Assembly (NCBI GenBank): GCA_013416795.1
Contig: RQSC01000003.1
Span: 147,181 to 175,484 of the forward strand
DNA length: 28,304 nt
Direction: 5' to 3'
Source: Prasinococcaceae sp. CCMP 1430
Taxonomy: Eukaryota > Plantae > Prasinodermophyta
Shown: piece after piece, positions 1,436 through 27,314 of the stretch
Layout of the letters: every line of letters starts with the position of its first letter
Numbering within the stretch: the first letter of the stretch is position 1
Notes under the pieces: model-generated
Database searches by the model: none
What the model was told of the DNA's origin: nothing
Seen by the model: only the letters and a program-made list of their open reading frames with translations
Made by a program: the position numbers and the translations under genes

Positions 1436-2280
1436 TCAATAGTGCTTGTCCCGCTGGAAGCACTCGTTGCCCCCCACCCGCCTGCCGTTGGGATAGTTGC
1501 CGCCGGTGATCACGTTGTATTGCGTGAGCTTGGTGCGCGAAGCACCCGCGCGCTCCAGCTTCCGGCTGACCTCGATTGACCGCGTGGGGAAGTGGTCGTT
1601 GGCAGAGGTGATCATCTCATCACCGCTGCGGGCGTCGGAGCGCCCGGCGTCGAGGCACGCGCGAAAAGGTGATCGTGGGTCGCATGGCCGCGGCCGCAGC
1701 TGCGTGTCAGCGCCCTGAAGCGCGCGTGCGAGAAAGAGAGACCTCGAGCGCAGGCAACATACCGTCTTGTGGTCTTCCACGTCTCCTTGTTTTCCGAGGG
1801 CACGATGAGCTCGCGCGTCTCGGCATACCCGGACTTGTCTCTGAAGTCGACCTGCGTGGTGCTCGCGAGAAACTCCCGCGAGGGCAGCGCACCAAGCACG
1901 ACCTCGGACTTCGTCTTGGGCGGTTGTCGGCGCTTCTCTGCGACGTGTGGCTGCGGTTGGAACTGCGTGCGCGTCTCGGTTGCGTCGCTCAGCGTATCGG
2001 AGCTCGGATCGGATGCGAACGAGATCTTCCAGCTCGTCTCGTAGAAGCTGCTGCCGGCGCCGCGGCGCGGGCGCGCGGCTGGCTCGCCCGCAGCGTGCAG
2101 CGACTGGCTGCGTGCGAGGTCGGGCGCGGGGTAGTGATTCACACGCTGCTGCAGATCGTTTCCGAAAGAGTCGGCGAACGAGCGAGGATCGGCGCGCGGC
2201 GCCGATGATGTCCGCGCCGGCGCCTTCACGGGCTCGTCCGTCCCCCACGGCGGCCAGTTGCTGCTCTCGTGCTGCGGCAT
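1436..2280 (-). CDS. Hypothetical protein (~235 aa, 2 exons: 2280-1763 and 1625-1436), possibly a ciliary microtubule-associated protein
   Basis: gccATG at 2280 (MPQHESSNWPPW...). Donor GTATGT at 1762. Acceptor cccgcAG at 1626 joins in phase to a coding-like last exon (RGDEMITSANDHFPTRSIEVSRKLERAGASRTKLTQYNVITGG...HY*). TGTAA lies downstream. The acceptor choice is uncertain. Confidence 0.6.
1626..1762 (-). other. Spliceosomal intron (GT-AG, 137 nt); alternative acceptor at 1700
   Basis: Donor GTATGT. The distal acceptor restores the coding-like frame. A proximal GCTGACacgcAG acceptor at 1700 would give a 63-nt intron and a shorter C-terminus. Confidence 0.5.
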
Positions 2281-2499
2281 GGCCGTCGCGGCGCACGCCC
2301 CGGCCCGCAGGGAAGCGACGCCCCTCCCTCGCGCTCTCCCGAGCCGCGCTCGGCGCCCTCGGCGAGCGCTCGAGCGCCTCGCCGCGCGACGGCGGCGCGC
2401 GGCCGCTGCGGTCCGCGTGTGTGGCGCCGCGCGCCCCGCGTGGGCGCGCGACGTCCAGTCAAGCAGCGCGCGCTGCAACGGGGAACACCAACTCGTGAG

Positions 2500-2700
2500 A
2501 ACAAATTCAATGCGGTCCGCGAGGGGTTTATCGGTTGGCCGGTTGCACTACCTGTCAGTCGGAACATTTACTGTAACCCTATTTCCTATGGATTAACCCT
2601 ATTAACCGCGTTTCCAAAACCGAAATCGCGCCGAAGGTGCATGTTTTTTTGCATCGGCCGTGCAGAGATCGCCCGTTTTCTAATTTGACGTCAAGATGGA
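2500..2700. promoter_or_regulatory. AT-rich bidirectional promoter region with two TAACCCTATT (telobox-like) copies
   Basis: AT-rich island between divergent ATGs at 2280(-) and 2962(+). TAACCCTATT occurs at 2574-2583 and 2594-2603. Confidence 0.5.
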
Positions 2701-2961
2701 TGTTTTGATGCACAGCTCTGGGATCGCGCGGCGCGCGCGCGTGGCGCCAACACCCCCCGGTCGCCCCACACACCACCACCTCCACTCCACACACCCCTCA
2801 CGCACACCTCTGCCCGCTTGTGCTGTAGCGCGCAGCGGTGCTGCTGCCGCCGCTCGCCACACGCCGCGCGCGCGACGGCCGCCGGGCGGGCGGGCGGGCG
2901 GGCAGGCTGGGATGGGGAACGCGAGGAACGCGCTCGGTGGCCTCGGCGCTGGCGAGGGGCG

Positions 2962-4440
2962 ATGGCGGAGCCCGCGGCGCCGGCGGTGTCTCGCGTGGCG
3001 ATCGCCGGCGCGACGCTCGCGCACGCGCTTGCGGATGCGGCCGCTGGCGACGCCGACGGATGCGACCTGGCGCTCCTCCTTGGGCGCGTTGAGCGCTCCG
3101 CACGCCTCGCGAGCAAACGCGAGGCGGATGCGGCGGCGGGCGCGGTGGGGGCGCAGACCGTGCGCGCGCACATCGTGCGGCTCGCGCACGCGCACGACCG
3201 CGCACGCGCGCGTAGGTCTCCACTGTTCTACGATGCGCGCGGGCGAGTCGACGTGCGCGCCCTCGATGGATGGGTGCGTCAGGCCCAGGCCCAGGCCCGA
3301 GCTGAAGCGGCACGTGGGTGCGAGGACGGCGGCGACGCAGGCGAACCATCGCACCAGCTGCTGGGATGGTGCGTCACCCGGCCGTACGCCCGCCTCGCGC
3401 CGTCGATCCGCGAGGCCGCAGCGGCCCGCTCGCTCGCGGCGACCGGCCGCTGCGCCATTGCGCCGCTGCTGCTTCTCATCGGCCTCGCAGAGCCGCAGGA
3501 CGGGTCGCTCGTGGTCTCGACGGAGTACTCGATCACGCAGGTCGATCCGCGTTCGGGGGAGCTGGTGCCCACATCGATGGACGTGCTCAATCTCGGCACG
3601 GCGCACGGCAGGTACGGCGGGCTGGCCGACGTGGCGGCAAGGGACAGCGCTGGCTGTGGCGCAGACTCCCCGAGTCTGCGCTCGCTGGCCGAGGGCGCGG
3701 AGAGCACCGCGCGTGGCATCGAGGAGTACTATCGCGCAGAGGCGAGCAAGCTCGAGAGCGTCGAGCGGGCTCTGCACGAGTCGAACGGACGCTTGGCGGA
3801 GCTTCGAATGCGACAGCGCGCGCACCTGCATGGCCACCAAGAGCAGCCGCAGGGGCGCCATGCGGAGCAATCCACGCAAGAGCAGCTGCCGCGTGACGGC
3901 GTAGACTGGGAGGCGGGACCCGATGCAGGGCGCGCGGATGCCACGCCAGGTGACGACGGCGCTGGCCAGCTGGAGCAGCCAGCCCACGAGCCAGCCACGC
4001 TCGAGCTGCAGCAGCAGCAGCAGCAGCAGCAGCAGCACGAAGGCGACTGCCTAGCTACGCATGGCGAGCAGGAGCGGCAGCAACAGCAACAGCAGGGACC
4101 GCAGCACCTGCCGCGGCAGCAAGAGGAGCACGGGCGGGTGTCCGACGCGGGCGCGGAGAGCGGCGACGTGGCCCTGTGGGGCGCTGAAGGTGCTACAACT
4201 GCGACGTTCGATCTCGGACCGGCCGCGGGGGAGGAGGGTGCGCACTCCAAGGCTGTGCAGCGCAGGGAAGACGCCGCGAGCTCGCCGAAGGGACTCGATG
4301 GCACTGCGCAAGGTGGCCACGAGAGCGGCGGCGCGAGCTCGAAAACTGCTGCCGTCGCGGAGCTCGCGCGCTCGCCGCCCACGCCGGCGCCAGAGGACCC
4401 GCCACAGCTCGCTGACGGTGTGTCCCCTCGAGCACTTTGA
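2962..4440 (+). CDS. Abraxas/ABRO1 (FAM175)-like MPN- pseudo-deubiquitinase scaffold with coiled coil and low-complexity tail
   Basis: ATG at 2962. Motifs FYDARGRVDVRAL, LLGWCVTRPYARLAPSIRE, STEY and DVLNLG..GRY parallel the Abraxas FYN.AG.V...L / VVGW..FR......TFRE / STH..E / VANLG...GY pattern. No HxH zinc ligands. Followed by a coiled coil (IEEYYRAEASKLESVERALHESNGRLAELRMRQ). Confidence 0.7.
   Translation: MAEPAAPAVSRVAIAGATLAHALADAAAGDADGCDLALLLGRVERSARLASKREADAAAGAVGAQTVRAHIVRLAHAHDRARARRSPLFYDARGRVDVRALDGWVRQAQAQARAEAARGCEDGGDAGEPSHQLLGWCVTRPYARLAPSIREAAAARSLAATGRCAIAPLLLLIGLAEPQDGSLVVSTEYSITQVDPRSGELVPTSMDVLNLGTAHGRYGGLADVAARDSAGCGADSPSLRSLAEGAESTARGIEEYYRAEASKLESVERALHESNGRLAELRMRQRAHLHGHQEQPQGRHAEQSTQEQLPRDGVDWEAGPDAGRADATPGDDGAGQLEQPAHEPATLELQQQQQQQQQHEGDCLATHGEQERQQQQQQGPQHLPRQQEEHGRVSDAGAESGDVALWGAEGATTATFDLGPAAGEEGAHSKAVQRREDAASSPKGLDGTAQGGHESGGASSKTAAVAELARSPPTPAPEDPPQLADGVSPRAL
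4009..4035 (+). repeat. (CAG)9 encoding polyQ
   Basis: Nine consecutive CAG codons in the Abraxas-like ORF. Confidence 0.95.
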
Positions 4441-10429: not shown

Positions 10430-10790
10430 GACGTAACCCTAACCAGACTGGCAATATTTACGGTTATTCTCTGTCTCGAGGCATGGCATACTGGAACAAG
10501 AGTCTCTGTGTGTCCTGGCCTGTACAGTACCAAGTAGAGTTGCTTTTTAGGGTCTGTTTTGATGTGCAATTCGATGGAAAGTGATGGGAGGGTGCGACCG
10601 GCGCCGCGCGGCGGTGCGGCGGCCGGTGCTCGCCGCGTTCCCGTTCGGGCGCGCGCGCGCCTCCAAGGCGTTTTGACGGGCGTTTTTTTTTTCCCTGACG
10701 AGGACGAGTTTGTTCTGTCTGAGCGTACAGTACGTATGTCCATGGAGGAAGGCGAATTTTGGTGGAAAAACTTTTTTTTTGGCGGCCTCG
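10430..10790. promoter_or_regulatory. AT-rich divergent promoter region (WH2 gene / dynein) with telobox-like motifs and poly(dT) tracts
   Basis: TAACCCTAACC at 10434-10444, TTTTTAGGG at 10544-10552, T-runs at ~10683-10692 and ~10772-10780. Confidence 0.45.
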
Positions 10791-11124
10791 GGCCGGCGCC
10801 ACAGCGCGCGCGCGCCGCGCCGCGCNCGGTGGCGGCGCTCATCGCCCGCGCTCGGCCCGGCGCGTGCGCGCGCGCGGGAGTGGGGCGGAATGGGATATAC
10901 GCGCCCGATCCCGGAGCGCCCCCGCGCCGCGGCGCAGGCCCCGCGATGCGCTCGCGCTCGCGCTGGGATGGCGCCTGCTCGCCTCGCGCGCTCGCGCCAG
11001 CGCATGGCCGCGCACGTGCCCTATTGCATTTCGTCTGCCATGCGCTGCTGCTGACGCACGCCCGTGCGCTGCGCCACCACCCACACACGTGAAACACGCA
11101 CACGCACACGTGCACTCCGCGCAG

Positions 11125-14100
11125 GCTGTAGTCGCCGACGAGGCATGCATCGAGTGGGTGCGTCAGCGCCTGACGTCCGTCGCACCAACCATCCAGGAAG
11201 TGTGGTCGGCGGACACGCACCTCAGCGCCGTGAACGACTTCCTCACAAGCGCGTCGTGCGGGCGGCTATTCGCGTATGTCCGCAGCACCGCCGGTGCGGA
11301 CGACTGCCCGTCCGACGCGGCCGAACCGCCTGCGGACGGCGGCGCCCATGGAGGGAGGCGCGTGCTCACGCTGCAGACCACCGTGCCCCCGGCGTGGGAT
11401 AAGCTGCTGTACATGGTGCGTGACACCAGCAAGCTCGTCACCGCGGACAACATCGGCCAGTGCGTGCACTTCGGCCTCGTCAACGGCGGCACGATGGACA
11501 ACATGCTGCAGATGATGGCCGGCGTCTACGTGCCGGCAGTCATAGGCAACAAGACGTGGCCCGACTCGGTGCGCAAGGAGTTCATGGGACAGCTGCACAA
11601 GTTCATGGCCAATTTGACCGAGGCGGCGTTCGAGGCCAAGGGTCGGACGGTCCTGTACATCCCCAACGAAGAGCTTGGCCGCCCCGACGTCGCGGCCGCC
11701 GAGAAGGACCTAGTGCAGCGCCTGGAAAGCACGCTCATCCACTGGACGCGCCAAATCAAGGAGGTTATCCTCAACCAGGACAACTCAGAGGTCGGCGAGG
11801 AAGCGGGCCCGCTCGCCGAGATCGAGTTCTGGCGCTCGCGCAGCGTCGACCTGAGCGGCATCCGCACGCAGCTCGACGACCCGGGCGTCGCGCGCATCGT
11901 GGGCGTGCTTGAGATCGCCCGATCGAGCTACCTGTCGCCCTTCTCCGACCTGAGCTCCCTCATTCAGCACGAGGCCGCCGCCGCCGAAGACAACCTCAAA
12001 TTCGTGTCAAGACTCGAGGCGCCGTGCCAGGCGCTCAGCAAGGCCGAGCCCGAGGGCATCCCGCTGCTGCTGCCCACGCTGCTGCACTGCATTCGCATGA
12101 TCTGGAACATCAGCGGTTTCTACAACACCCCGGAGCGGCTGACTGGCCTGCTGCGCAAGGTGTCCAACGAGATCATCAATCGCTGCAGCGCGTCCATCTC
12201 GCTGAGCGACATCTTCGACGGCGACCTGGAAAGCGCCATGGGCGCGCTGCGGCAGTCGATCCGCGCCGGCGAGGCGTGGAAGCGTGCCTACCGCTCGACC
12301 ACCGCGGCCATTTCGCGTGCGGGTGAGCGCGCATGGGACTTCGATGTGTCGTCGATCTTCGCGCACATCGACGCTTTCGTGCAGCGCTGCCGCGACATGC
12401 TCGAGGTCTGCGAGGCGCAGACGCAGTTCGCGCCCCGCACGCGGCTGCCCGCCTTCGGTGGCGCGCGCGGCCCTGAGATCTCCAAGTCGCTGCTCGACAT
12501 CCAGGCGAGCTTCCGCCGCCTGGTGGTGTCGCTGCGCTCGCTCGACTACAACATCCTCGACGTCAAGGCAACGCGCTGGCACGACGACTACAACTCCTTT
12601 AAGAGCGGCGTCAAGGATCTCGAGGTGATGATGCAGCGCGTCATCGCGCTGGCGTTCGAGTCGGTGTCGGACCTCTTCGTCAAGGTGGAGCTGCTCGAGG
12701 CCTTCCAGGCGATGGCCAAGCGCGAGTCCATCTCGCGAGCCGTCGAGAAGAAGACAGCCGAGGTGTACGCCGCCTTCATCGCGGAGCTCAACGCCACACG
12801 CAAGCACTTCGACTCGCATCGGCGCTCGCCGCCGGTTGACCCGGCGTTCCCGCGCCACAGTGGCGCCGCGCTGTGGGCGCTCGGCCTACAGCGCCGCATC
12901 GATAAGCCCATGGCGCGCCTCGAGAAGGCCGTGCCGTACTTGCCGCATGCAGGCGAGGCGGACGAGCTGCGCGCGGTGCACGAGGGCCTCAGCTCGGCCA
13001 TCGAGATGTTCATCAAGGACCAGAACCACAACCAGTGGTTCAACTCGCTCGACGCCTCGCTGTCGCTCAAGCTGGACAACACACTCATCGCCATGGGTGA
13101 CGACGGCCTCCTGCGCGTCAACTTCGACAAGCAGGTGCTCAGCATGTTCGCCGAGGTGCGCTACTGGGAGCGTTTGAACATGGAGATCCCGTACGTGGCG
13201 ATGGAGATCAGCTCGCAGCGCGAAAAGTTCCGCGTGCTCTGCGAGAACGTCAAGCTGGTCGTGCGCGACTACAACCGCGTCGTCACGAGCCTCGACGCCA
13301 GCGAGAGGAGGCTCTTCGCCAACCGCATCCACCACCTGGACCGCCGCATAGCTCCGGGCATCCACAAGCTGCAGTGGACCTCCCCCAAGCACACACTTGA
13401 CTACTACGTGCGTGAGGCGCGCAAGTACGCCGGCGAGGCGTACAGGATCGTCCTCGAATGGCAGGCTGTAAACGCGCGCATCGCCGCCAACGCTCGCCTC
13501 ATCGCCGAGACGAGCCTGATCTCGATCGAAAAGAAGCGCGTCTACGAGCAGTTTGAATTTGAGGAGCGCCAGCGCGAGCACCGCGAGCTCGTGCGCGCGC
13601 GCTTCGAGAAAGCCCACTCCGAGATTCAGGCCACGCTCGAGGACATGTACCAGACCTTCGCCCAGGACTCGCAGGACGTTCAGGAGGCCTGGCACGCCTA
13701 CACCTCCGTCGTGGACAAGCGCTTACTCGCAGCGCTGCGCACCGCGGTGAAGCGCTCGCTGCTGGAGCTCTCGCGCGCGCTCACCGGCGACGGCAAGACC
13801 GAGGTGACGTCCATCTTCACCGTGAGCGTGGTCCTCAACCCCCAGAAATGCTGCGTGGAGCTCAAGCCGAGCGTGCAGGATCTGTTCAACATGATCCACA
13901 ACGTGAGCCGCGAGCTGGTGAGTGTGCTCAAGGCGGTGCCGCGCATCGCTGAGCCCACGCGGCTTGGGGGGGAGGAATACGAGCCGCCGGCGTTGCCCAC
14001 TTTCTTCGACATCATCAGCACCGATGACGACACGACCCTCAAGACGATCGTGTCGATCACCACGGGCATCACGAAGATCGTCGACAAGGTGCAGCAGTTC

Positions 14101-17100
14101 ACGTTCTACTGGAGCTCCAAGTACAAGCACATCTACGACCAGGACAAGGACGCGCACATGCGCCGCTACGAGGAGGCCAAGAAGCCGCTCGCGTCCTTCG
14201 ACAGCGACATCGTCAAGTACAGGGACCTGCAGGACAAGGTTCAGGGTGAGGACACGAGCATCAACATGAGCTTCCTGCACCTCGACTCCGCGCCGCTCAA
14301 GCAGGCGCTGGTGGCGCACTGCGAGGAGTGGGCCGGCCGCTTCCTCAAGCTGCTCAACGCTTTGGCCGCCGACGAGCTGCGTGCCATCCACTCGCACTTC
14401 AGCAGCACCACCGAGGAGCTGCGCCGCCCTGTGGTCAACTTGGATATGCTCGCGGACAGCGTGGCGCTCCTCAAGCGCACGGTCGCCGACGCGCCCCACA
14501 TGGAGGCGCGCTTTGAGCCGCTCGAGGAGAAGTACCGCGTGCTAGAGAAGTTTGACCACGACGTGGGCGAGCAGGAGCAGGCCCTGCGCGAGTCCCTGCA
14601 ACCTTCGTACGCGGCATTCTGCGCGATGCTGCAGGAGACCGAGCTCGACCTCGAGCGCGCCAAGGAGCAGTTTCGCGAGCAGCTGCAGAAGATGGTGGCC
14701 GAATTCACGCGCAGAGTCGCTGAGCAGCGCGAGCTCTTCTCGCAGGAGGCGCCCTTTACGGTGGAGGGCTTCACGCACCCCCAGGCTGTCGAGTACATCG
14801 AGGGCGCGCGCGAGGAGGTGGCCTCCAACCGCAAGAGAGAGGCGGAGCTCGCCAAGGGTCTCGAGATCTTCACAATGGCGCCGCCGCCGTACAAGGAGCT
14901 CGACGACACCGAGCGCGACCTCGCGCTGCTCGAGGGCGTGTGGGCCATCATCGACGAGTGGCAGCGCCGCTTCGACGGCTGGAAGGACGGCAAGTTCCGC
15001 GAGCTCGAGGTTTCGGCCATGGAGGAGGAGGCCGTGCGCGTCAACAAGAAGATCGCTAAGATCGGCCGCGAGATCCGCCAGTGGCCCGTGTGGCAGCACA
15101 TCCGCGCGACGGTCGACTCGTTCAAGTTGACCATGCCGCTCATCACTGACCTGCGCAACGAGGCCATGCGCCCCCGCCACTGGGAGCAGCTCATGGAGCT
15201 CATCGGCGAGCGCTTCGACCCCCAGGGCGACGACTTCACGCTTGGGCGCGTGTCGGAGTTCCGCCTGGACACCTTCGCCGACAAGATCGGCGAGCTCTCG
15301 AGCAACGCCAGCAAGGAGCTGCAAATCGAGGTGGCCTTGGAGAAGATCGACGAGAAGTGGCAGGTGAACGAGCTCGACATGGTACCGCACAAGGAGGGCG
15401 TGCCCGACGTGTACAGATTGCGCTCGGCTGAGGACGTCTTCAACGACCTCGAGGAGAACATCGTGGCGCTCTCCACCATGAAGAGCAGCCGCTTCTTTTT
15501 GTCGTTCGAGGATGACATTACGAAGTGGGAGCGGGCGCTCTCGCTGGTCAGCGAGATGATCGAGATCATCCTGCAGGTTCAGAGGAATTGGATGTACCTC
15601 GAGAACATCTTCGTGGGCTCCGAGGACATCCGCAAGCAGCTGCCGGCCGAGTCCAACATGTTCGACTTCGTCGACACGACCTTCAAGCGCTCCATGCTTG
15701 CCATGTTCGAGGCGAAGAACGTGCTCAAGGCCACGCACCTGCCCAAGATGCTCGACACCTTCCAGGACATGGACGCAAAGCTCGAGCGCATCCAGAAGTC
15801 GCTCGACGCCTACCTCGAGAAGAAGCGCCAGCAGTTCCCGCGCTTCTACTTTCTGTCCAGCGACGACCTGCTCGAGATCCTGGGCCAGGCCAAGGATCCG
15901 CTGAACGTGCAGCCTCACTTCAAGAAATGCTTCGAGGGAATCAAGAAGCTGGACATGCACGCGCCGGCGCTGGCCGAGGGGCGCCGCCACTTCGAGGCGA
16001 GCGCCATGACGAGCCCCGACGGCGAGACGCTGCCCTTCGCCGACGCCGTGAAGACCGAGGGCAGGCCTGAGGATTGGCTGAACGATGTGGAGGCCACGAT
16101 GTACGCCACCACCAAGCACTTTCTGCTTCGGACCATCGAGGAGGCCAAGGGCATGAAGAAGGATCGCTGGGTGAAGGAGTTCCCCGGGCAGTGCATCATC
16201 TCCGCCGGTCAGGTGCTGTGGACGGCCGACTGCGAGCGCGCGCTCTCCGATGCCGAGACGAGCAAGGCCGCGCTCAAGCTGCTCAAGAAGAAGTGGGTGA
16301 ACTACCTCAACAAGTTGACGGCTATCACGCGCAGCAAGCTCAACAAGGTCGAGCGCAAGAAGACCGTCGCGCTCATCACCATCGAGGTGCACGCGCGTGA
16401 CGTCATCGAGAAGCTCGTCAAGGCCGGCTGCTCGAGCGACTCGGCATTCGAGTGGGTGTCCCAGCTGCGCTTCTACTGGGACCGCGAGATCAACGACTGC
16501 GTCGTCAAGCAGGTGCTGAGCATTTTCAAGTACGGCTACGAGTACCAGGGCAACAACGGCCGTCTCGTCATCACGCCGCTTACTGACCGCTGCTACATGA
16601 CGCTGGGCGCGGCCATGTTCACGCGCCGTGGCGGCAACCCGCTCGGGCCCGCGGGTACCGGAAAGACAGAGACCGTCAAGGCGAGTTCAGCCCGAGCGCA
16701 CTCCGCTGCCACGCGCGCACGGGCACATACATACACACACACACACAAACGTACGCACACGCGCTGACGCACGCGCGGCACACACACACACACACAGGAC
16801 TTCGGCAAGGCGCTGGCACGCTACGTGGTGCGTTCCGCGCGCGCGCGCGCGCGCGCGCGCTGGGTGCTACGTTTCGCGGGGCGCCACAGCACGCGAGACG
16901 CCGCAGCACGCGAGATGCCGAGTCCTCCAAACCTCGCGCGACTGACCCCGCGTGCCTACACTGCATCAAAACTCGCAGATCGTCTTTAACTGCTCGGATG
17001 GCGTCGACTACAAGATGACCGCCAAGATGTTCAGCGGGCTTGCACAGACGGGGGCGTGGTCGTGTCTCGACGAGTTCAACCGCATCGAGGTGGAGGTCCT

Positions 17101-20100
17101 CAGCGTCGTCGCCACGCAGATCTCGGTGGTGATGTCGGCCATCAAGGCGGGCAAGAGCCGCTTCATCTTCGAGGGCGAGGACATCCGGCTCATTCCGTCC
17201 TGTGGAATTTTTGTGACCATGAACCCCGGCTACGCCGGGCGCTCGGAGCTCCCCGACAACCTCAAGGCGCTGGTGCGCCCCGTGTCGATGATGGTTCCCG
17301 ACTTCACGCTCATCGCCGAGATCATGCTCTTCTCGGAGGGTTTCCAGACGGCGAAGCCGCTCTCCAAGAAGATGATCTCCATCATGGAACTCTCGCCGCA
17401 GCAGCTGTCCAAGCAGGACCACTACGACTACGGCCTGCGCTCGTTCGTCATCCCGATCGCGCGCGCGGCCGGCGCGCTCAAGCGCGCCGACCCCGACGTG
17501 GCCGAGGACTTCATTATGTACCGCACAATGCTCGATCTCATCAAACCCAAGCTGGTGTACGCCGACCTCCCGCTGTTCCAGGCGCTGCTCTCCGACCTCT
17601 TCCCGGGGCTCGAGCTCAACGACGCGGGCAGTGCCGAGCTGCGCGCGGAGCTGGAGGCCCAAGTCAGGGCCGCCGGCCTGCAGATCGTGCCGGACTGGAT
17701 CACCAAGATGGTGCAGATCTTCGACTGCAAGGTGGCGCGGCACGGCAACATGATCGTCGGCAAGACGGGCGCGGGCAAGTCCGAGGCGTGGAAGTGCCTC
17801 ACGCGCGCTATGGCCGAGCTTAAGAAGCGAGGCGCGCAGGGCGAATACGAGCGCGTGACAGTGCACACCATCAACCCGCTATCGCTCTCCAACGACGAGC
17901 TGTACGGCTCGTTCGACGCCGCGACGCACGAGTGGTCCGACGGCGTGCTCGCCAAGCTCATGCGCACCATCTGCCGCGACGAGGGGCTCGACCAGAAGTG
18001 GGTGCTCTTCGACGGCCCCGTCGACACCCTGTGGATCGAGTCGATGAACACGCTGCTGGACGACAACAAGCTGCTGACGCTTCTCAGTGGCGAGCGGATC
18101 TCCATGCCAGCGCAGGTCTCGCTGCTCTTCGAGGTGGAGGACCTCTCAGTGGCCTCGCCCGCGACGGTCTCCCGCGCGGGCATGATCTACATGAATACCG
18201 AGGACCTGGGCTGGCAGCCCTTCGTCACCAGCTGGCTTGAAAGGAAGACCGACGCGGCCATGGTGCAGACGCTGCGCCGCATGGTCGACAAGTATGTGGG
18301 CGCCACGCTCGAGTTCAAGCGGCTCAACTGCGCCGAGAGCGTGCCCGTCGACCAGCTATCGTCGGTGCGCTACACGTGCGCGCTGTTCGACTCGCTGGCG
18401 ACCGCCGAGAACGGCGTCGACCCGTCCGAGGGCGACGAGCGCCTCCCCCTCGTAGAGATGTGGTTCCTCTACGCGCTGATTTGGGCGATGGGCGGCACGG
18501 TCGACGAGGAGGGGCGCAAGAAATTCGACATGTTCTTGCGCGAGCTCGACGCGCGCTACCCGAGCCAGGACACCGTGTTCGAGTACTACGTCGACCCCAA
18601 GAAGAAGGTGTGGACGCCTTGGGAAGAGAAGCTGGGCGCGGCCTACCGCCCGGCCCCCGACACGCCCTTTTTCAAGATGGTGGTGCCGACGGTCGACACG
18701 CTGCGCACGCGCGCCGTGCTGGACGCCTACGTGCGCGTCGGCCGCCACGCGCTGCTGACGGGGAACGTCGGCGTGGGAAAGACGCTCGTGATTGAGGGCC
18801 TGCTCGCGGCGCTGCCGAGCTCCAAGTCGAGCGTGACCATCAATTTCTCCGCGCAGACGGGCGCCAAGTCACTGCAGGAGACCATCGAGGGCAACCTGGA
18901 GAAGCGGACGAAGGGCGTCTTCGCGCCAGTGGGTGGCAAGAAGCTCGCCGTGTTTTGCGACGACCTGAATATGCCCGCAAAGAGCGTCTTCGGATTCATG
19001 CCGCCGCTCGAGCTCCTCAAGCTGTGGATGGACAACGGCTTCTGGTACGACCGGCAGCGCCAGGAGGTGAAACACGTCAAGGACATGCAGCTGCTGGGCG
19101 CCATGGCGCCGCCCGGCGGCGGCCGCAACGCCTTCTCGCAGCGCATCCTGTCCTGCTTCGGCGTGCTCAACATGACGGCGCCGAGCGACGCGCAGGTGCG
19201 CCGCATCTTCGGTGCGCTGCTCAGCAGCCGGCTCAGCGACTTCGACGACGAGATTAAGCCGCTCTCCGAACCCATCGCCGCGGCCACCACCGAGATCTAT
19301 AACGCGGCGCTCGAGCACCTCCTGCCCACGCCGTCCAAGTGCACGTACCTCTTCAACCTGCGCGACGTGGGCAAGATCGTGCAGGGCGTCCTGCAGGCGA
19401 GCCGGTCCTACTACGACAGCCGCGAGTCGCTGCTGCAGCTGTGGTGCCACGAGACGCAGCGTGTCCTGTCGGACCGCATGTGGTCGTCGGACGACAAGAC
19501 GTGGCTAGTGTCGCAGATCGACAAGCGGCTGAACGAGGACATGTCGACGAGCTGGGGGGCGCTCTTCGACCGCGGCGAGGTGCCGCCTTTCGTGAGCTTC
19601 ATGCGCGAGGTGGAGTCGCCGCCGTACGAGGCCGTTAACGACATGAACGCGCTCAAGGACCTGCTCACCGAGAAGCTGGAGGACTACAACCTCGAGCCCG
19701 GCACCAGCGCGATGGACCTTGTGCTCTTCCGCGACGCCATGCACCACCTGTGCCGCATCCACCGCGTACTGTGCCTCCCGCGCGGGAACGCGCTGCTCGT
19801 GGGCATTGGCGGGTCGGGCCGAAAGTCGATGGCGCGCCTGGCGGCGTACGTGGCCGAGCTCAAGGTGTTCTCCATCGAGATCACCAAGAATTACCGCCTG
19901 CAAGAGTTCTACGAGGACCTCAAGATGCTCTTTAAGCAGGCGGGGGCCTCAAACAAGCCCACCGTCTTCCTCTTCGACGACCAGCAGATCGTGCACGAGA
20001 CCTTCCTGGAGGCGATCAACAACATCCTCACCAGCGGCATCGTGCCGAACATCTTCCCCAAGGACGAGCTGTCACCCATCCTCGATGAGTGCCGCGCGGA

Positions 20101-23100
20101 CGCCAAGAAGGTAGGCATGGGCGACACGGCCGACCAGGTGTTCAAGTTCTTCCTCGAGCGCGTGCGCAGCAACCTGCACGTGGTGCTGTGTCTGTCGCCC
20201 ATCGGCGAGGCCTTTCGCAACCGCGTGCGCATGTTCCCCGGGCTGGTCAACTGCACCACCATCGACTGGTTCACCGAGTGGCCGGGCGACGCGCTCTTTG
20301 AGGTGGCCGCCAAGCTGCTCGAAGAGGAGAGCCTCGGCTCCGACGAGGTGCGCACCAACATCTGCAAGGTGTTCGTGACGGCGCACACCTCCGTGTCGGA
20401 GGCGTCCGACCAAATGCTGCGCTCGCTCAAGCGCCACAACTACGTGACGCCCACCAACTATCTGGAGACGCTCAACACGTACCGCATGCTGCTCAAGGAG
20501 AAGCGCGCGAGCGTGGGCGAGCAGGCTAACAAGCTGAGCGGTGGTCTCGAGAAGCTCGGGGAGACGTCGGTGCAGGTGGGCGAGATGCAGGTGGTGTGCG
20601 AGGACAAGAAGGTGGTCGTGGCCAAGGCAAAGAAGGACTGCGAGGAGCTGCTCGTGGAGATCGTGCAGGAGAAGCGCATCGTGGACGAGCAGGAGAAGAC
20701 GGTCAACGCCGAGGCGGCCAAGATCGAGAAGGAAGCTGCGGAGACGCAGGTTATCGCCGACGACTGCCAGCGCGACCTCGACAAGGCGATGCCAGCGCTG
20801 AATGCGGCCGTTGAGGCGCTCAACGTGCTCACGAAGAAGGACTTGTCCGAGGTGAAGGCGTACGCCAAGCCGCCGCCGGCCGTCGAGACGACCCTCAACG
20901 CCGTCCTGACGGTGCTGAAGCGCCCCGCGGGCTGGGACGAGGCCAAGAAGCAGCTCAACGACTCCGCCTTCCTCACCAAGCTGATGGAGTACGACAAGGA
21001 CCTGCTCAACGACGCGCTGCTGAAGAAGATCGGCAAGTTCACAGGGCAGGAGGACTTCACGCCCGACAAGGTGGGCAAGGTGTCGGGGGCGTGCCGCGGC
21101 CTGTGCCTGTGGGTGCACGCTATGGACACCTACGGCCACGTGGCCCGCGACGTGGCCCCCAAGCGCGCCAAGCTCAAGGCGGCGACCGACACGCTCAACA
21201 AGAAGCAAAAGGCGCTCAAGCAGGCCAAGGCACAGCTCGCCGAGGTGCAGGCGAAGGTCCAGGCGCTTAAGGACAAGTACGAGCAGTCGACATCCTCCAA
21301 GGAGGCGCTGCAGCGCGAGGCCGAGGACCTCGAGCTCAAACTGCAGCGCGCGGAGAAGCTGGTGAACGGCCTGGCGGGCGAGAAGGGCCGCTGGGAGGCG
21401 TCGATCGGCGTGCTGCAGGAGCAGCTCACCCAGCTGCCCGGCGACGTGATGATGGCAGCAGCCTTCATGTCGTACGCGGGGCCCTTCCCCAAGACATACC
21501 GCGAGGAGCTCGTCGAGCACACGTGGATGAAGCAGCTTCAGCAGCTGGCGGTGCCCAGCTCGCCCAAGTTTGACTTCGCGGGCTTCCTGGCGGATCCATC
21601 CGACGTGCGTGACTGGAACATCCAGGGGCTGCCCAGCGACTCGTTCTCGACGGAGAACGGCGTGATGGTCACGCGCGGCCGCCGCTGGCCGCTCATGATC
21701 GACCCGCAGTCGCAGGCCAACCAGTGGGTGCGCGCCATGGAGGCCAAGAACGGCCTGCAGCTCATCGACCTGCAGATGCCAGGCTACATCCGCACGGTGG
21801 AGAACGCCGTGCAGTTCGGCTCGCCCGTGCTGCTGCAGAATATCCTCGAGGAGATCGACCCCATCCTCGAGCCCCTGCTCTCGAAGGCCTTCATCAAGAA
21901 GGGCAACTCGACGCTCATCAAGATCGGCGACAAGGAGCTCGACTTCTCGCCCGACTTCAAGCTGTACATCACCACGAAGCTCTCCAACCCGCACTACCAA
22001 CCGGAGATCTCCACCAAGGCGATGATCTGCAACTTCGCGCTTTCGGAGCAGGGCCTCGAGGCGCAGCTGCTGAACACCATCGTCAAGAAGGAACGGCCCG
22101 ACCTGGACCAGCAGAAGGGCGAGCTGGTGGTCAAGGTGGCCGCCGGCAAGCGCAAGCAGGCCGAGCTCGAGGACACCATTCTGTACATGCTCTCCACAGC
22201 GACCGGCTCGCTGCTCGACAACGTGGAGCTCATCAACACGCTGGACAGCTCCAAGGTGACCTGGGAGGAGGTGAACGAGTCCCTCAAGGTGTCCGAAGAG
22301 ACCTCCGAGATGATCGACCAGGCGAGCTCGGCGTATCAGCCGAGCGCGCTGCGCGCGTCCGCCCTGTACTTCGTGCTGAGCGACCTCGCGATGATCGACC
22401 CGATGTATCAGTTCTCGCTGGACGCCTACCAAGAGCTCTTCCTCACGTCGATCGCCAAGTCAGATAAGTCTGAGGTCATCGCTGAGCGCATCAAGAATCT
22501 CAACGACTATCACACGTATGCCGTGTACCGCTACACGTCGCGCGGTCTGTTCGAGAAGCACAAGCTGCTGCTCTCCATGCAGCTGTGTGTCAAGATTCTT
22601 CAGAGCTCTGACGCCGTCAACATGCAGGAGTGGACGTACCTGCTGCGCGGCGGTTTCGTGGTGGACAAGGCGGCGCAGCCGGCCAACCCCGCCCCGGCGT
22701 GGATCAGCGAGGAGATGTGGGACAACGTCTCGATGCTGGAGGAGCTGCCCAACTTCAAGGGCGTGGTAGCATCCTTCGAGCAGGCCAGCATGGTCTGGGA
22801 GTGGTACCGCGAGGGCGAGCCCGAGGTCGCCGAGCTGCCAGGCGAGTGGGAGGCGAAGTGCGACGAGCTGCAGCGGCTGGTCTTCGTGCGCTGCCTGCGG
22901 CCCGATCGCGTCATCTTCGCGGCCACCTCGTACGTTGCCAACAACCTCGGCCGCAAGTTCGTTGAGCCGCCGGTGCTGGATCTCGGCGAGGTGTACGTCG
23001 ATTCGAACCCGCTGACGCCCATCATCTTCGTGCTGAGCCCCGGCGTGGACCCCACGTCCAACCTGCGCCAGCTCGCGCAGCAGCAAAGCCAGGACGACCT

Positions 23101-24784
23101 GGTGGCCATCGCGCTCGGCCAAGGCCAGGCGCCGCACGCAACGAAGGCCATCGAGGCCGCCGTGGGTAGCGGCGGCTGGGTGTTCCTGGCCAACTGCCAC
23201 CTGATGACCAGCTGGCTGCCCGCGCTCGAGAAGATCATCGAAGACCTGCCAAACAAGAAGCCGCACGCCAACTTTCGGCTGTGGCTGTCGTCCAACCCCA
23301 CGGCCGACTTCCCGATCAACATCCTGCAGGGCGCGCTCAAGCTCACCACGGAGCCGCCACGCGGCCTGCGCGCGAACCTGCTTCGCATGTACTCGACCGT
23401 CTCCGAAGAATCGTTCGCCGAGTGCCGCAACGCGCAAAAGTACTCCAAGCTTCTCTTCTGCCTGGCGTACTTCCACTCCGTGCTGCTCGAGCGCCGCAAG
23501 TTCCAGTCTCTTGGCCTCAACATCCCGTACGACTTCAACGACACCGACTTCGCAGTGTCGGACGACCTGCTCAAGACGTACCTCGACGAGTACGCTGAGG
23601 TGCCCTGGGACGCCCTCAAGTACCTCATTTCGGAGGCGAACTACGGCGGGCGCGTCACGGACGAGCTGGACAGGCGCGTGCTCAACTCGTATCTCGAACA
23701 GTTCTACTGCGAGGACGCGCTCAACGTGCCCAACTACCCGCTGTCGACGCTCACGCACTACTACGTCCCCGAGCACGGCACGCTGCAGTCGTACAGGGAC
23801 TACATCCTCACGCTGCCGTCGGTGGACGACGCCGAGGCGTTCGCCCAGCACCCCAACGCGGACATCTCGTACATGATCCATGACTCGAAGACTATCCTCA
23901 ACTCGCTGGTCTCGTTGCTCCCGCGCCAGTCCGAGGGTGAGGGCACGTCCACCGACGACATCGTCACGAGCGTGCTGGAGGACCTCACCACGCAGGTGCC
24001 AGGCCCATGGAATCTCGAGGAGGTGCAGAAGGCCAAGGCCGGCGATCCGAGCGCGCTGCACGTTGTGCTCTTCCAGGAGGTGGAGCGCTACAACGTGCTG
24101 CTGAGCCTGCTCCATCAGACGTGCGAGGCCACTAAGAAGGGCATCAAGGGGCTGGTGGTCATGTCGGCCGAGCTCGACTCGATCTTCAACGCGGTGGCCG
24201 CCGGCAAGGTGCCTGACGCGTGGAAGAAGACCTACCCGAGCCTCAAGCCGCTGGGCTCGTGGATGCGCGACCTGGTGCAGCGCGTTGAGGAGCTCAACCA
24301 GTGGATCACCGGTTCGTACCCCAGCGTTTACTGGCTGTCGGGATTCACCTACCCGACGTGCTTCCTCACGGCCGTGCTGCAGACCACCGCGCGCCGCGAC
24401 GCCATCCCCATCGACACGCTCAGCTGGGACTTCTCCGTCGTCAACCTCAACGAGAGCGAGATTGCGCAGCCGCCAAAGGACGGCGTGTACATCAAGGGCA
24501 TCTTCCTCGAGGGCGCTGGCTGGGACTTCGACAACGGGTGCCTCACAGAGCCCGAGCCGCAGGAGCTCATCGTATCGATGCCCATCCTCCACTTCAAGCC
24601 CGTGGAGAACAAGAAGAAGTCGGCGAGGGGGCTGTACTCGAGCCCGCTGTACCTGTACCCGCTGAGGACGGGCACCCGCGAGCGGCCCTCGTACATGATC
24701 TCGGTCGACCTCAAGGCCGGCGCGCACGACTCGGACGTCTACGTCAAGCGCGGCACCGCACTGCTGCTCGCGCTCGACCAATAG
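11125..24784 (+). CDS. DNAH2: Axonemal inner-arm dynein I1/f beta heavy chain (DHC10/IDA2; DNAH2 orthologue); exons 11125-16680, 16798-16827 and 16979-24784 (4463 aa) plus an unresolved short first exon
   Basis: DHC tail (LESTLIHWTRQIKE, GPLAEIEFW), linker (FPRFYFLSSDDLLEILG) and P-loops [32 protein letters not shown], then stalk, AAA5/6 and C-terminus RGTALLLAL. Segments such as [27 protein letters not shown] and YGLRSFVIPIARAAG match my recollection of Chlamydomonas DHC10. Acceptor gcgcAG at 11124. Confidence 0.95.
16681..16797 (+). other. Non-canonical GC-AG intron (117 nt) with CA-rich tract
   Basis: The exon ends ...ACC GTC AAG. The intron begins GCGAGT, has GCTGAC at ~16763 and ends cacacAG. 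Only this junction restores the conserved [11 protein letters not shown]. Confidence 0.88.
16798..16827 (+). other. 30-nt in-frame micro-exon ([10 protein letters not shown]) of dynein AAA1
   Basis: Bounded by AG (16796-97) and GTGCGT (16828). Supplies the residues missing between the two long ORFs. Confidence 0.92.
16828..16978 (+). other. Intron (GT-AG, 151 nt, phase 0)
   Basis: Donor GTGCGT, ACTGAC at ~16941, acceptor actcgcAG. Coding resumes IVFNCSDG. Confidence 0.92.
16836..16860. repeat. Perfect (CG)12C alternating tract
   Basis: 25 nt of uninterrupted CG alternation, 8 nt into the intron. Confidence 0.95.
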
Positions 24785-24969: not shown

Positions 24970-25060
24970 ACACACACACACACACAACACACACACACAA
25001 ACAACACACACACACGCTCGCACGCACACGCACGCACGCACACACACACACACACACACA
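24970..25060. repeat. (CA)n-rich microsatellite
   Basis: Interrupted CA/CACG repeats. Confidence 0.95.
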
Positions 25061-25075
25061 TGGCCATCGACTCAC

Positions 25076-25250
25076 CCAGAATAGTCCCACCGACGAAGTC
25101 GACCGACCGCGACGATGTTGAGACTGACGAGCCGCCGCGACCTTTCATCGAGCCCAGCCTGAAGCAGGGCTCTCCAGGCGCAGCGAGGGCGTGCATAGAG
25201 ACTATGCACGTCGCACGGACTGGCTGAGGACAGCCATCCGTGTCCCCATC
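25076..25250 (-). ncRNA. Putative structured RNA; candidate Fanzor/TnpB omegaRNA scaffold
   Basis: Four adjacent stem-loops: 25215-25241 (ACGGA.TGGCTG/CAGCCA.TCCGT), 25183-25214 (perfect CGTGCATAG/CTATGCACG plus GCGA/TCGC), 25150-25172 (GAGCCC/GGGCTC) and ~25084-25107 (CGAC/GTCG core). Lies downstream of a Fanzor-like C-terminus on the same strand. Confidence 0.45.
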
Positions 25251-25280
25251 TGGTGGTGGGGAGAGTGGTGGAAGAGAGGG

Positions 25281-25390
25281 TGTGCGTGTTCGTGCCTGCG
25301 CGCGTGTATGTGTGTGTGTGTGTGTGTGTGAGAGAGAGCCTGTGTGTGAGGGCCTCTGTGTGTGCGTCTGTGTGCGAGCATGTGTGCGTG
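25281..25390. repeat. (TG)n-rich microsatellite
   Basis: Pure TG run at ~25309-25330 within a broader TG/AG-rich tract. Confidence 0.95.
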
Positions 25391-25435
25391 GGTGGTGGGG
25401 GTGCGTGCGTAGGGCGGGTCACATCGGACCGGCGC

Positions 25436-26060
25436 CTACTGGCCAGTGTAGAGCTGAAGCATGATGTTGCGTGCGGCGTTGTCGTCCCGGCCCATGCTGC
25501 GTGACTGTCCTGCCAGGCTTGAACATCTCCGCATGCTTGCACGACTGGGCGGTGATGGTGATGGTCCAGGCCGAGCGTTCGCGTTTGTTCTTAAAGCGCA
25601 GCTCGAAGGCGTGCGCCGGCTGCCCACGTTTCAGTCGCTCCTCCTGCTTGCTCACGTTTGAGGCGTGGGCGTGAAACGCGTCCCGGCACGCGTGCTGCCG
25701 GACACAGGCAGCGATGTTGCTGAGGCCCGGGTGCTGGCGTATGAAGTGCCCCTTCGTCCTGGTCCCCGATGGGATGCGCTGTGCCTGGTCCCTGCCGTCG
25801 TTGATCTGCTGCAGCGCTCTCTTGAAGTCCTCGCTCTGCGACATGAAGGTGGACTCCTTGGGCCCTCTGCCCGTGTCCTCAGTGGCCAGGCATTGCATGA
25901 TGACCTTCTCCACCCACTTGGAGAGGGGCTCGGCGGCCTCAGTGCCGCCCGCGTGCCTGCCAACGCCTGCGTTGCGCAGGAGCTCGACCGCCAGGTTATA
26001 AATCTTCCTGGCGCCGCGCATTTGCTGCATCAGCCAGCGCCGCTGACGAGTCGATGGTGC
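25436..26060 (-). mobile_element. Internally deleted Fanzor2 / IS200-IS605-IS607 TnpB-like gene remnant (N-terminal HTH/WED-REC part plus RuvC-III tail)
   Basis: Frame A: PSTRQRRWLMQQMRGARKIYNLAVELL (HTH_OrfB-like P-x3-Q...AR..YN.A) and LSNIAACVRQHACRDAFHAHASNVSK...FELRFKNKRERSAWTITI (Fanzor2-like VR..A..DA..A..SN...F.L.F..K). Frame B, 25495-25436: MGRDDNAARNIMLQLYTGQ* (RuvC-III DRD.NAARNI). No RuvC-I DPG, RuvC-II or zinc finger between them. Confidence 0.75.
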
Positions 26061-26843
26061 GCTGCAGGTTGAAGGGGACGCTCTGGATGGCGAGCTTGTC
26101 CGCCCCGATCTTCGAAAAGCCGGGGATGTCGCTCACGGTGGACAGCAGGCTCTCGGACGACGCGCTGACGGTGCTCACGAGGCCGCGCTGCTCGCGGGAG
26201 GGCGGGGTGGACTCCAGCAGCTGCGTGACGCCGATCATGCCGTTCAGCGGGGCCCTGATCTCGTGCGACATGGTGGCGAGGAAGCGGCTCTTCAGCGCCG
26301 CCGCCGCCTCCGCCTCCTGCGCGGCCGCCGTGGCCTCGGCCTCGGCCTCGCGGCGCCGCACGAGCTCGCTGATGTCGCTCTGGATGCCCACGTACTGCGT
26401 GAGGTTGCCCGCGGCGCCGCGGATGGGCGTCACCGACGGGTAGTTCACGAAGGGCGTGCCGTCCCTCTTGTAGTTGAGCATCTCCACGCTGACGTGCTCG
26501 CCCGCCAGGATGGCGTTTCGCAGCTTGGCGAGCGGCGCGGGGTCGGTGCCCTCGCCCTGCAGGAAGCGGCAGTTGCGCCCGAGCGTGTCCTCCACGCTGT
26601 ACCCCGTCATGGTGTAGAACGCCTCGCTGGCGAAGACCAGCGGCATGTCGGGCAGGCGCGCGCCGGCGATGGTGATGCCCTCCGAGAGCATGCTCATGGC
26701 GCGCACCTTGAGCCACATGGACGCCCCCTGCCGGACGGCATGGTCGATCAGCTGCTTGGCGTCCAGCGCCTGCTGATGATCTGCCGCAGCTCGCGCGCCG
26801 ACTTGTTGTGCAGGGACGCGTCGGCCGCCGTGCCGCTGGGCAT
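26045..26843 (-). pseudogene. LOV-histidine kinase pseudogene fragment (LOV + HisKA; HATPase and receiver absent; frameshift near 26770)
   Basis: GRNCRFLQG with the photoactive Cys (26571-26569), LNYKRDG.PF.N and GIQSD, then KSRFLATMSHEIRAPLNG (phospho-His). Truncated after PFNLQRTIDS. The upstream MPSG...RQIIS (ATG 26843) is in another frame. Many conserved residues are substituted. Confidence 0.85.
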
Positions 26844-26893: not shown

Positions 26894-27314
26894 NNNNNNN
26901 NNNNNNNNNNNNNNNNNNNNNNNNNNNNNNNNNNNNNNNNNNNNNNNNNNNNNNNNNNNNNNNNNNNNNNNNNNNNNNNNNNNNNNNNNNNNNNNNNNNN
27001 NNNNNNNNNNNNNNNNNNNNNNNNNNNNNNNNNNNNNNNNNNNNNNNNNNNNNNNNNNNNNNNNNNNNNNNNNNNNNNNNNNNNNNNNNNNNNNNNNNNN
27101 NNNNNNNNNNNNNNNNNNNNNNNNNNNNNNNNNNNNNNNNNNNNNNNNNNNNNNNNNNNNNNNNNNNNNNNNNNNNNNNNNNNNNNNNNNNNNNNNNNNN
27201 NNNNNNNNNNNNNNNNNNNNNNNNNNNNNNNNNNNNNNNNNNNNNNNNNNNNNNNNNNNNNNNNNNNNNNNNNNNNNNNNNNNNNNNNNNNNNNNNNNNN
27301 NNNNNNNNNNNNNN
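26894..27314. other. Assembly gap (421 N)
   Basis: Run of n. Confidence 1.

Follow-up and report, generated by a model that had tools for sequence, protein, structure and literature searches.

How is an open reading frame to be understood that resembles part of an RNA-guided nuclease and is followed, in another frame, by the end of the same nuclease? This question is raised by a locus in the window, the 28,304-nucleotide stretch of Prasinococcaceae sp. CCMP 1430 DNA that was analysed here, in which a sequence-only reading had noticed a Fanzor2/TnpB-like remnant with both ends kept and the catalytic middle deleted. Fanzor2 proteins are guide-RNA-directed RuvC DNA nucleases and represent the branch of the TnpB family that occurs in eukaryotes and giant viruses. 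The stretch is very probably a pseudogene fragment, left without function, of a Fanzor2-type gene that would have been carried by a mobile element. The features of the remnant and its flanks, in the order in which they are read on the minus strand, are:

26046..26843 or 25996-26843, minus strand: open frame with LOV/PAS and HisKA domains (Pfam PAS_9 2e-16, HisKA 1.7e-14; PDB histidine kinase 2.8e-22)
26011..26060, minus strand: junction zone between the LOV-HisKA ORF and the 5'-truncated Fanzor fragment (kinase alignment to 7z8n and alignment A3)
25500..26060, minus strand: N-terminal Fanzor2-type fragment of about 185 codons, with the second half of the HTH/WED helix, the REC helices and a WED strand
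25493..25513, minus strand: internal deletion and frame-change junction (alignment A1, HMM coordinates 312 then 575, three-frame translation)
25436..25492, minus strand: RuvC-III tail GRDDNAARNIMLQLYTGQ and stop, in a frame that differs from that of the N-terminal piece (25-column C-terminal profile)
25484..25486, minus strand: codon of the retained RuvC-III catalytic Asp, aligned with Asp501 of ApmFz2 and D484 of the relative P0009 (HMMER alignment of P0009 with 9b0l)
25076..25435, minus strand: 3' flank of the remnant, with CA-rich low-complexity sequence at 25280-25420 and then a 175-nt folding block at 25076-25250

The N-terminal piece is found in the frame of a minus-strand ORF, which runs from an ATG at 26030 to a stop at 25419 and encodes 203 amino acids (MQQMRGARKIYNLAVELL...AFELRFKNKRERSAWTITI); the frame is free of stops from 26132 on, leaving 237 codons open. 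The extended frame around this ORF translates as ...QRRWLMQQMRGARKIYNLAVELLRNAG ... IAACVRQHACRDAFHAHASNVSKQEERLKRGQPAHAFELRFKNKRERSAWTITITAQSCKHAEMFKPGRT...; the second half of the HTH/WED helix reads 'MRGARKIYNLAVELLR' and the WED strand reads 'FELRFKNKRERSAWTITI'. Using hmmsearch with a profile of 11 full-length relatives, the six-frame translated window gave a match at 25422-26132 (minus strand) with E=3.8e-29, which covers positions 133-312 of the 593 profile positions, the WED/REC part. The Fanzor homology of this piece begins at around profile position 133-140 in the helix '...Q..L...M..R..YN', at about 26045-26060. In an exhaustive HMMER scan of 1.84 billion representatives (phmmer), 13 relatives of the ORF were recovered at E<=1e-3 with 28-62% identity. 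A word-index protein search with the ORF returned only the ORF itself (P0001), and a search of the ESM Atlas gave nothing above 0.76. Direct scans of the N-terminal and the tail ORF revealed no TnpB-type match in Pfam or NCBIfam and, with phmmer, none in the PDB; the Pfam TnpB models cover stretches that this copy lacks. Each of the two pieces was searched on its own, not as a joined read-through product.

An AF2 model of the 237-residue N-terminal piece, which was built from a 46-sequence alignment, reached a pLDDT of 68.7 and a pTM of 0.61. Foldseek, which had been proposed as a check of the Fanzor assignment, found no significant match for this model, the best being Cas12n with E=1.2. VIA-align was run on the candidate structures from Foldseek, and residues 10-176 of ISDra2 TnpB (8H1J) scored best (rmsd 4.0 Å, 142 aligned residues) with a Z of 9.7, which lies in the range below about 13 that can be reached by chance in helical models. 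Cas12n, Cas12m2, Cas12f and Cas12m followed, and the top nine rows were all N-terminal regions of TnpB or Cas12 proteins. Since such Z scores can arise by chance, the structural match supports the assignment but does not stand on its own.

The tail is opened by an ATG at 25495-25493, from which M-GRDDNAARNIMLQLYTGQ is read up to a stop at 25438-25436, and it forms the end of a separate 63-aa ORF (25436..25627); the sequence-only reading had given the position of the remnant, the frame change and the motif at the end of this ORF exactly. A RuvC-III profile of 25 columns, which was made from 38 family members of the algal and the giant-virus type, matched the tail (GRDDNAARNIML...) with E=2.4e-5 as the sole significant piece of the window, the next best having an E-value of 1.1. 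Against the full-length profile of 593 positions, the tail was not significant (E=1.2), yet it was placed at positions 575-589, which is the collinear position. It is collinear with the N-terminal piece, lies on the same strand directly 3' of it and resembles the natural C-terminus of the family, as seen in P0009 (...CGRDENAARNILLKYL). The RuvC-III motif R-D-x-N-A-A-x-N-I is present as GRDDNAARNI at 25463-25492. A DNA pattern back-translated from the tail occurred at one place in the window and in none of 100 dinucleotide shuffles, with an expectation of about 1e-5 per window. Judged from these sequence comparisons, both the N-terminal piece and the tail exceed chance, and a TnpB/Fanzor/OrfB-type profile match exists for each of the two fragments.

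The full-length relatives (511-767 aa) carry the Pfam domains Cas12f1-like_TNB (PF07282, 1e-6 to 6.5e-18) and HTH_OrfB_IS605 (PF12323), and one cluster of relatives is a 'putative IS605 transposase' of Chloropicon primus (QDZ22394.1). Invariant across ten full-length relatives are D301-P302-G303, E449 within the motif E-x-Y-T, the cysteines C456/C459/C474/C477 and R483-D484 (P0009 numbering); the canonical Glu position ('LPxF') is variable in the relatives, as judged from alignment A1. The DPG motif together with an alternative Glu is the signature that defines Fanzors and pro-Fanzors according to Yoon et al. (PMC10711439; see also PMC11832414). The closest solved structure is the mimivirus Fanzor2 9b0l ('TnpB-like protein L79'), which was matched by P0009 with 2.4e-22 and by profile A1 with 2.2e-31. 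TnpB, Cas12f, Cas12m and Cas12n chains matched the family more weakly (1e-12 to 1e-7), and at E<=1 the PDB searches with P0009 and profile A1 recovered no Fanzor1 chain (e.g., 8GKH). The placement with Fanzor2 rather than Fanzor1 is judged on the family; of the HTH helix, only the second half is left in the window itself. The matches of the two pieces to this family support the view that the remnant belongs to the TnpB/Fanzor superfamily and is of the Fanzor2 type, and the identity proposed for it from the letters alone has held up.

Among the 1.84 billion representatives, the best full-length relatives share at most 37% identity with the window copy. The only close relative is P0002 (123 aa; Logan/ENA, 6 contigs of at most 1,280 nt), which is 67% identical over 49 residues of the poorly conserved REC linker, after which the similarity ends as if the sequence were frame-shifted; P0002 is a second member of the sub-lineage of the window copy and looks like another damaged copy. 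A scan of IMG/VR with the fragment as the query found nothing. The same database searched with the family alignment gave 56 giant-virus contigs (L001-L056) with 25-43% identity to P0009, which agrees with the viral enrichment of Fanzor2 that is already known (PMC10530073). In the JGI metagenomes, just five relatives with 26-30% identity and no close parent were found. An intact parent, which had been suggested as possibly findable, did not turn up in the representative library, IMG/VR or the JGI metagenomes. The giant-virus carriers of the family include a contig of 344,691 bp (L003), and on another giant-virus contig the Fanzor2-type gene is followed, about 1 kb further downstream, by a second long ORF of 664 aa (L012:8299-10290), whose start looks TnpB-like by eye.

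In a tree based on the shared region, the fragment has no supported sister and a long terminal branch (1.35); it emerges from a polytomy that also holds one viral clade and three non-viral ones, namely the Chloropicon type, the P0003/P0004 type and the P0005/P0007 type. The viral rows form two groups in this tree, apart from the three non-viral clades.

The composition of the fragment bears on the question of its host. The window has about 65% GC (63-70% composition), and the GC3 of the host is above 0.9. In its own frame, the N-terminal piece has GC1/GC2/GC3 values of 0.59/0.48/0.857, and the GC3 of the tail is 0.83, compared with 0.90-0.93 in the dynein ORFs and 0.95 in the kinase frame. With a value of 0.857 against 0.90-0.95 in the host ORFs, the fragment was a coding gene that had adapted to the host genome. 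This suggests that the lineage resided in this genome or in another of similar GC richness and speaks against a recent transfer from an AT-rich virus; it also speaks for an inactivation that is fairly recent. The combination of an open frame of 203 codons and a high third-position GC content could reflect recent inactivation or residual coding constraint. It had also been supposed that the genome hosts, or hosted, a Fanzor family, possibly a new algal one; a resident lineage is indeed suggested by the host-like GC3, but what is left of the supposed newness is a divergent lineage within a kind already known, since the 'Fanzor2*' of C. primus has already been published (PMC10711439).

The host context is eukaryotic, the flanks being a dynein heavy chain, whose 2,610-aa ORF ends at 24784 on the plus strand, and a LOV histidine kinase. 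The dynein heavy chain as a whole spans 10759-24784 (plus strand) in two giant ORFs of 2,002 and 2,610 aa, which are parted by a short CA-repeat-rich stretch at ~16700-16950, probably a single microsatellite-type intron. It is improbable that the fragment stems from an integrated giant-virus segment instead of a cellular transposon, although Fanzor2 is enriched in giant viruses, relatives are encoded on the 56 IMG/VR contigs and the row of the window shares its polytomy with the viral clade: both flanks are cellular, viral ORFs are absent from the window, the GC3 is host-like as opposed to the visibly AT-rich sequence of the relative L060 (taken here as viral-type), and the nearest rows by tree path are those of the non-viral P0003/P0013/P0004 group.

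The remnant of a cellular Fanzor2-type gene, which is the preferred reading, shows three lesions. The first ~130 profile positions are absent from the window, i.e., the NLS, the N-terminal domain and the first WED strand; in the relatives, the NLS region is rich in K/R, the N-terminal domain contains 'PWW' and 'SWF', and the WED strand reads 'RKIRMRL'. The statement that both ends are kept therefore holds for the C-terminal end with its RuvC-III tail but not for the N-terminus, which is gone at the kinase junction. Inside the gene, the homology of the N-terminal piece fades past 'AEMFKP' (~25513), and that of the tail starts from 'GRD' (25492). About 255 residues in P0009 numbering, or about 275 profile positions, are missing in between, which corresponds to ~0.8 kb and comprises RuvC-I with the DPG Asp, the helical insert, the relocated Glu and the zinc finger. 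In alignment A1, the row of the window has nothing in the columns of RuvC-I, RuvC-II and the zinc finger, and these parts are not matched by any other piece of the six-frame translated window; the sequence-only reading had likewise described them as absent. In all, the window copy retains ~30% of the family columns. Of the catalytic features, the RuvC-III Asp is present, and the RuvC-I Asp, the relocated Glu of 'E-x-Y-T' and the CxxC...CxxC zinc finger are absent. In addition, family-invariant residues of the N-terminal piece are altered (G49R, A50G, W146G, A171S and R192K in P0009 numbering). Since the DPG columns of RuvC-I are empty and no other part of the window matches them, the remnant is a derivative of the TnpB/Fanzor superfamily and not a functional member; lacking the zinc finger and two members of the catalytic triad, the fragment cannot cleave DNA. 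It has no plausible activity and presumably does nothing now.

A rival idea is that the 203-aa ORF is a retained, possibly domesticated protein made only of the REC and WED parts of a Fanzor2, for example an RNA- or DNA-binding regulator, which might be made by itself or, through frameshifting or splicing, as a fusion with the LOV-HisKA frame. This idea is very doubtful. The 237 open codons and the host-like GC3 of 0.857 are in its favour, as is the gene caller, which predicted exactly this protein (P0001), and the ORF lies directly behind an intact-looking LOV-HisKA frame. In this 65% GC window, however, spurious ORFs of 100-770 aa overlap every real gene, so that an open frame is weak evidence of coding. 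Moreover, family-invariant residues such as W146 (changed to G) have been lost, and the WED fold cannot form because its first strand is gone. The similarity to P0002, the one close relative, ends after 49 residues, and no family of similarly truncated proteins was seen in the word-index or HMMER searches.

At the 5' side, the remnant is joined to the LOV-HisKA frame, and the two frames are one base out of register at the junction. The histidine-kinase alignment to 7z8n extends to residue 163, at ~26011, and the invariant columns Q30/L34 of the Fanzor frame (alignment A3) place the start of the Fanzor homology at ~26045. Because the weak homologies to the kinase and Fanzor families overlap there, the breakpoint lies somewhere within 26011-26060. 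The LOV-HisKA frame looks intact in that it contains GRNCRFLQG in the LOV domain and the H-box SHEIRAPLN in the HisKA domain, and its GC3 is 0.95. Neither a HATPase_c nor a receiver domain lies downstream of it; the kinase frame is truncated as well. The distance from the Fanzor junction to the dynein stop is only 1.25 kb. An assembly gap of 421 N (26894-27314) is located 0.85 kb upstream of the Fanzor junction and interrupts the upstream part of LOV-HisKA. That the real Fanzor gene is intact and that the deletion and the kinase junction are mis-joins is barely credible: this gap, the single Ns elsewhere and the low-complexity CA repeats in the flanks speak for an artefact, but both breakpoints are in unique contiguous sequence 0.85-1.4 kb from the gap, and the identical 203-aa product is encoded on a 2,092-nt contig in the protein database, which is possibly not independent. 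The fusion of the remnant to the truncated LOV-HisKA frame documents a local rearrangement within a region that is otherwise dense in genes.

On the 3' side, the unique 175-nt block at 25076-25250 (minus strand) forms several hairpins (-88.3 kcal/mol, z=-4.9 compared with shuffles). It starts 186 nt beyond the stop of the tail, past the CA-rich low-complexity sequence, is present in one copy only and had no match in Rfam. The block is bracketed by inverted CA/TG microsatellites at 25005-25061 and 25308-25364, which are 82% complementary. We lean against the block being a guide-RNA (omega-RNA) scaffold; part of the 3' flank may have belonged to the element, for instance as its right end, but the block could equally be the 3'UTR of the dynein gene read on the opposite strand.

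In the window, neither terminal repeats nor a target-site duplication, a transposase or a second copy could be recognized, so that the proposed definition of element ends, target-site features and an associated transposase has come to nothing there. The only inverted repeats around the remnant are the CA/TG microsatellites, and the left end of the element has been lost. A serine-recombinase TnpA ORF is missing around the remnant, and with it the canonical IS607-borne arrangement; likewise, the ten ORFs immediately upstream of relatives contain no resolvase domain. The relative L060, a metagenome sequence of the Chloropicon-type clade, contains a 2.06-kb unit with 78-nt TIRs that are 99% complementary and with only the Fanzor ORF inside. 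This ORF occupies 1615-3300, the TIRs lie at 1335-1412 and 3316-3393, and the right TIR begins 16 nt past the stop. Outside the TIRs, L060 has direct repeats of ~270 nt at 1047-1318 and 3392-3662, which are 96% identical; a normal target-site duplication would be very much shorter. The sequence also contains part of a third TIR copy (800-885) and a tandem array of 9-nt units (1451-1534). When the 3' flanks of L058 and L060 were aligned, no clearly conserved guide-RNA scaffold emerged. The TIR unit of L060 and the ten upstream ORFs without a resolvase indicate that the family is mostly 'solo' or TIR-borne, as published for Fanzor2*. As the window offers no TIR, target-site duplication, transposase or second copy, the transposon origin of its Fanzor fragment is deduced from these relatives.

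Taken together, the following history would account for the locus. The parent gene would have resided in a mobile element, most likely a short, TIR-bounded one of the kind that carries 'Fanzor2*' in C. primus, and its nuclease would have cut TAM-adjacent DNA by means of the triad of DPG-Asp, relocated Glu and RD-Asp together with the zinc finger. The 5' third of the gene, including the NLS, the N-terminal domain and the first WED strand, would then have been lost at the junction with the truncated LOV-HisKA frame, and an internal deletion of ~0.8 kb would have removed RuvC-I, the relocated Glu and the zinc finger, thereby shifting the frame. Several family-invariant residues would have been substituted as a third lesion. 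Double-strand-break repair or abortive gap repair may have caused these lesions.

The remnant is no working system but a transposon fossil of an ordinary kind. Its direct value is small, and it serves mainly as a probe or query for intact copies in this alga. Green algae with Fanzors on record are Chlamydomonas, Klebsormidium, Auxenochlorella and Chloropicon, and the remnant extends this patchy record; it also implies that a Fanzor2-type lineage lived in the alga long enough to acquire the extreme third-position GC bias of its host. There is a minor chance that the remnant points to a Fanzor2* lineage that had not been sampled before and is adapted to its host, a deep-branching and very GC-rich green alga; of this lineage, intact, active copies with guide RNAs may exist in this genome or in close relatives. 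If so, it would represent a new compact RNA-guided nuclease lineage native to eukaryotes and another capture of a Fanzor2 by a eukaryotic transposon.

Several named systems can be compared with the window copy and its family. Fanzor1 proteins (SpuFz1, 8GKH; PpFz, 9CF1) belong to the same superfamily and are eukaryotic; PpFz reached a Z of only 4.2 with the model of the N-terminal piece. ISDra2 TnpB (8H1J / 8EXA) has the same domain order as the family, WED-REC-WED-RuvC-ZnF-RuvC, but is bacterial, belongs to IS200/IS605 and uses the canonical Glu position. Its sequence likeness to the family is confined to the RuvC/zinc-finger part (~3e-7), which is absent in the window. The mimivirus protein ApmFz2 (L79, PDB 9B0L), whose catalytic triad is formed by Asp324/Glu467/Asp501 (PMC11832414), has the DPG Asp, the relocated Glu in 'E-Y-T-T' and the Asp of 'RDENAA.NI' in common with the family, and GRDDNAARNI of the window aligns with its residues 499-508. 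The REC part of the window gave no direct sequence match to 9b0l, where only the HTH region was matched, weakly (i-E 0.13). Unlike the window copy, ApmFz2 is viral, is accompanied by an IS607 TnpA and is active.

The Fanzor2s of C. primus have been termed 'Fanzor2*', which denotes a Fanzor2 on a cut-and-paste TIR transposon and not on IS607 (Yoon et al. 2023, PMC10711439). They are members of the same family as the window copy (P0008/P0026; BLASTP 31% identity over 115 residues, E=3e-12). The C. primus protein is full length with 662 aa and has all catalytic parts, whereas the window copy is frame-shifted, retains about 30% of the family columns and forms a long branch by itself that lies outside the Chloropicon clade. 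Both have a green alga as the host, and the C-terminal motif GRDxN(G/A)ARN(V/I)LLK is common to both.
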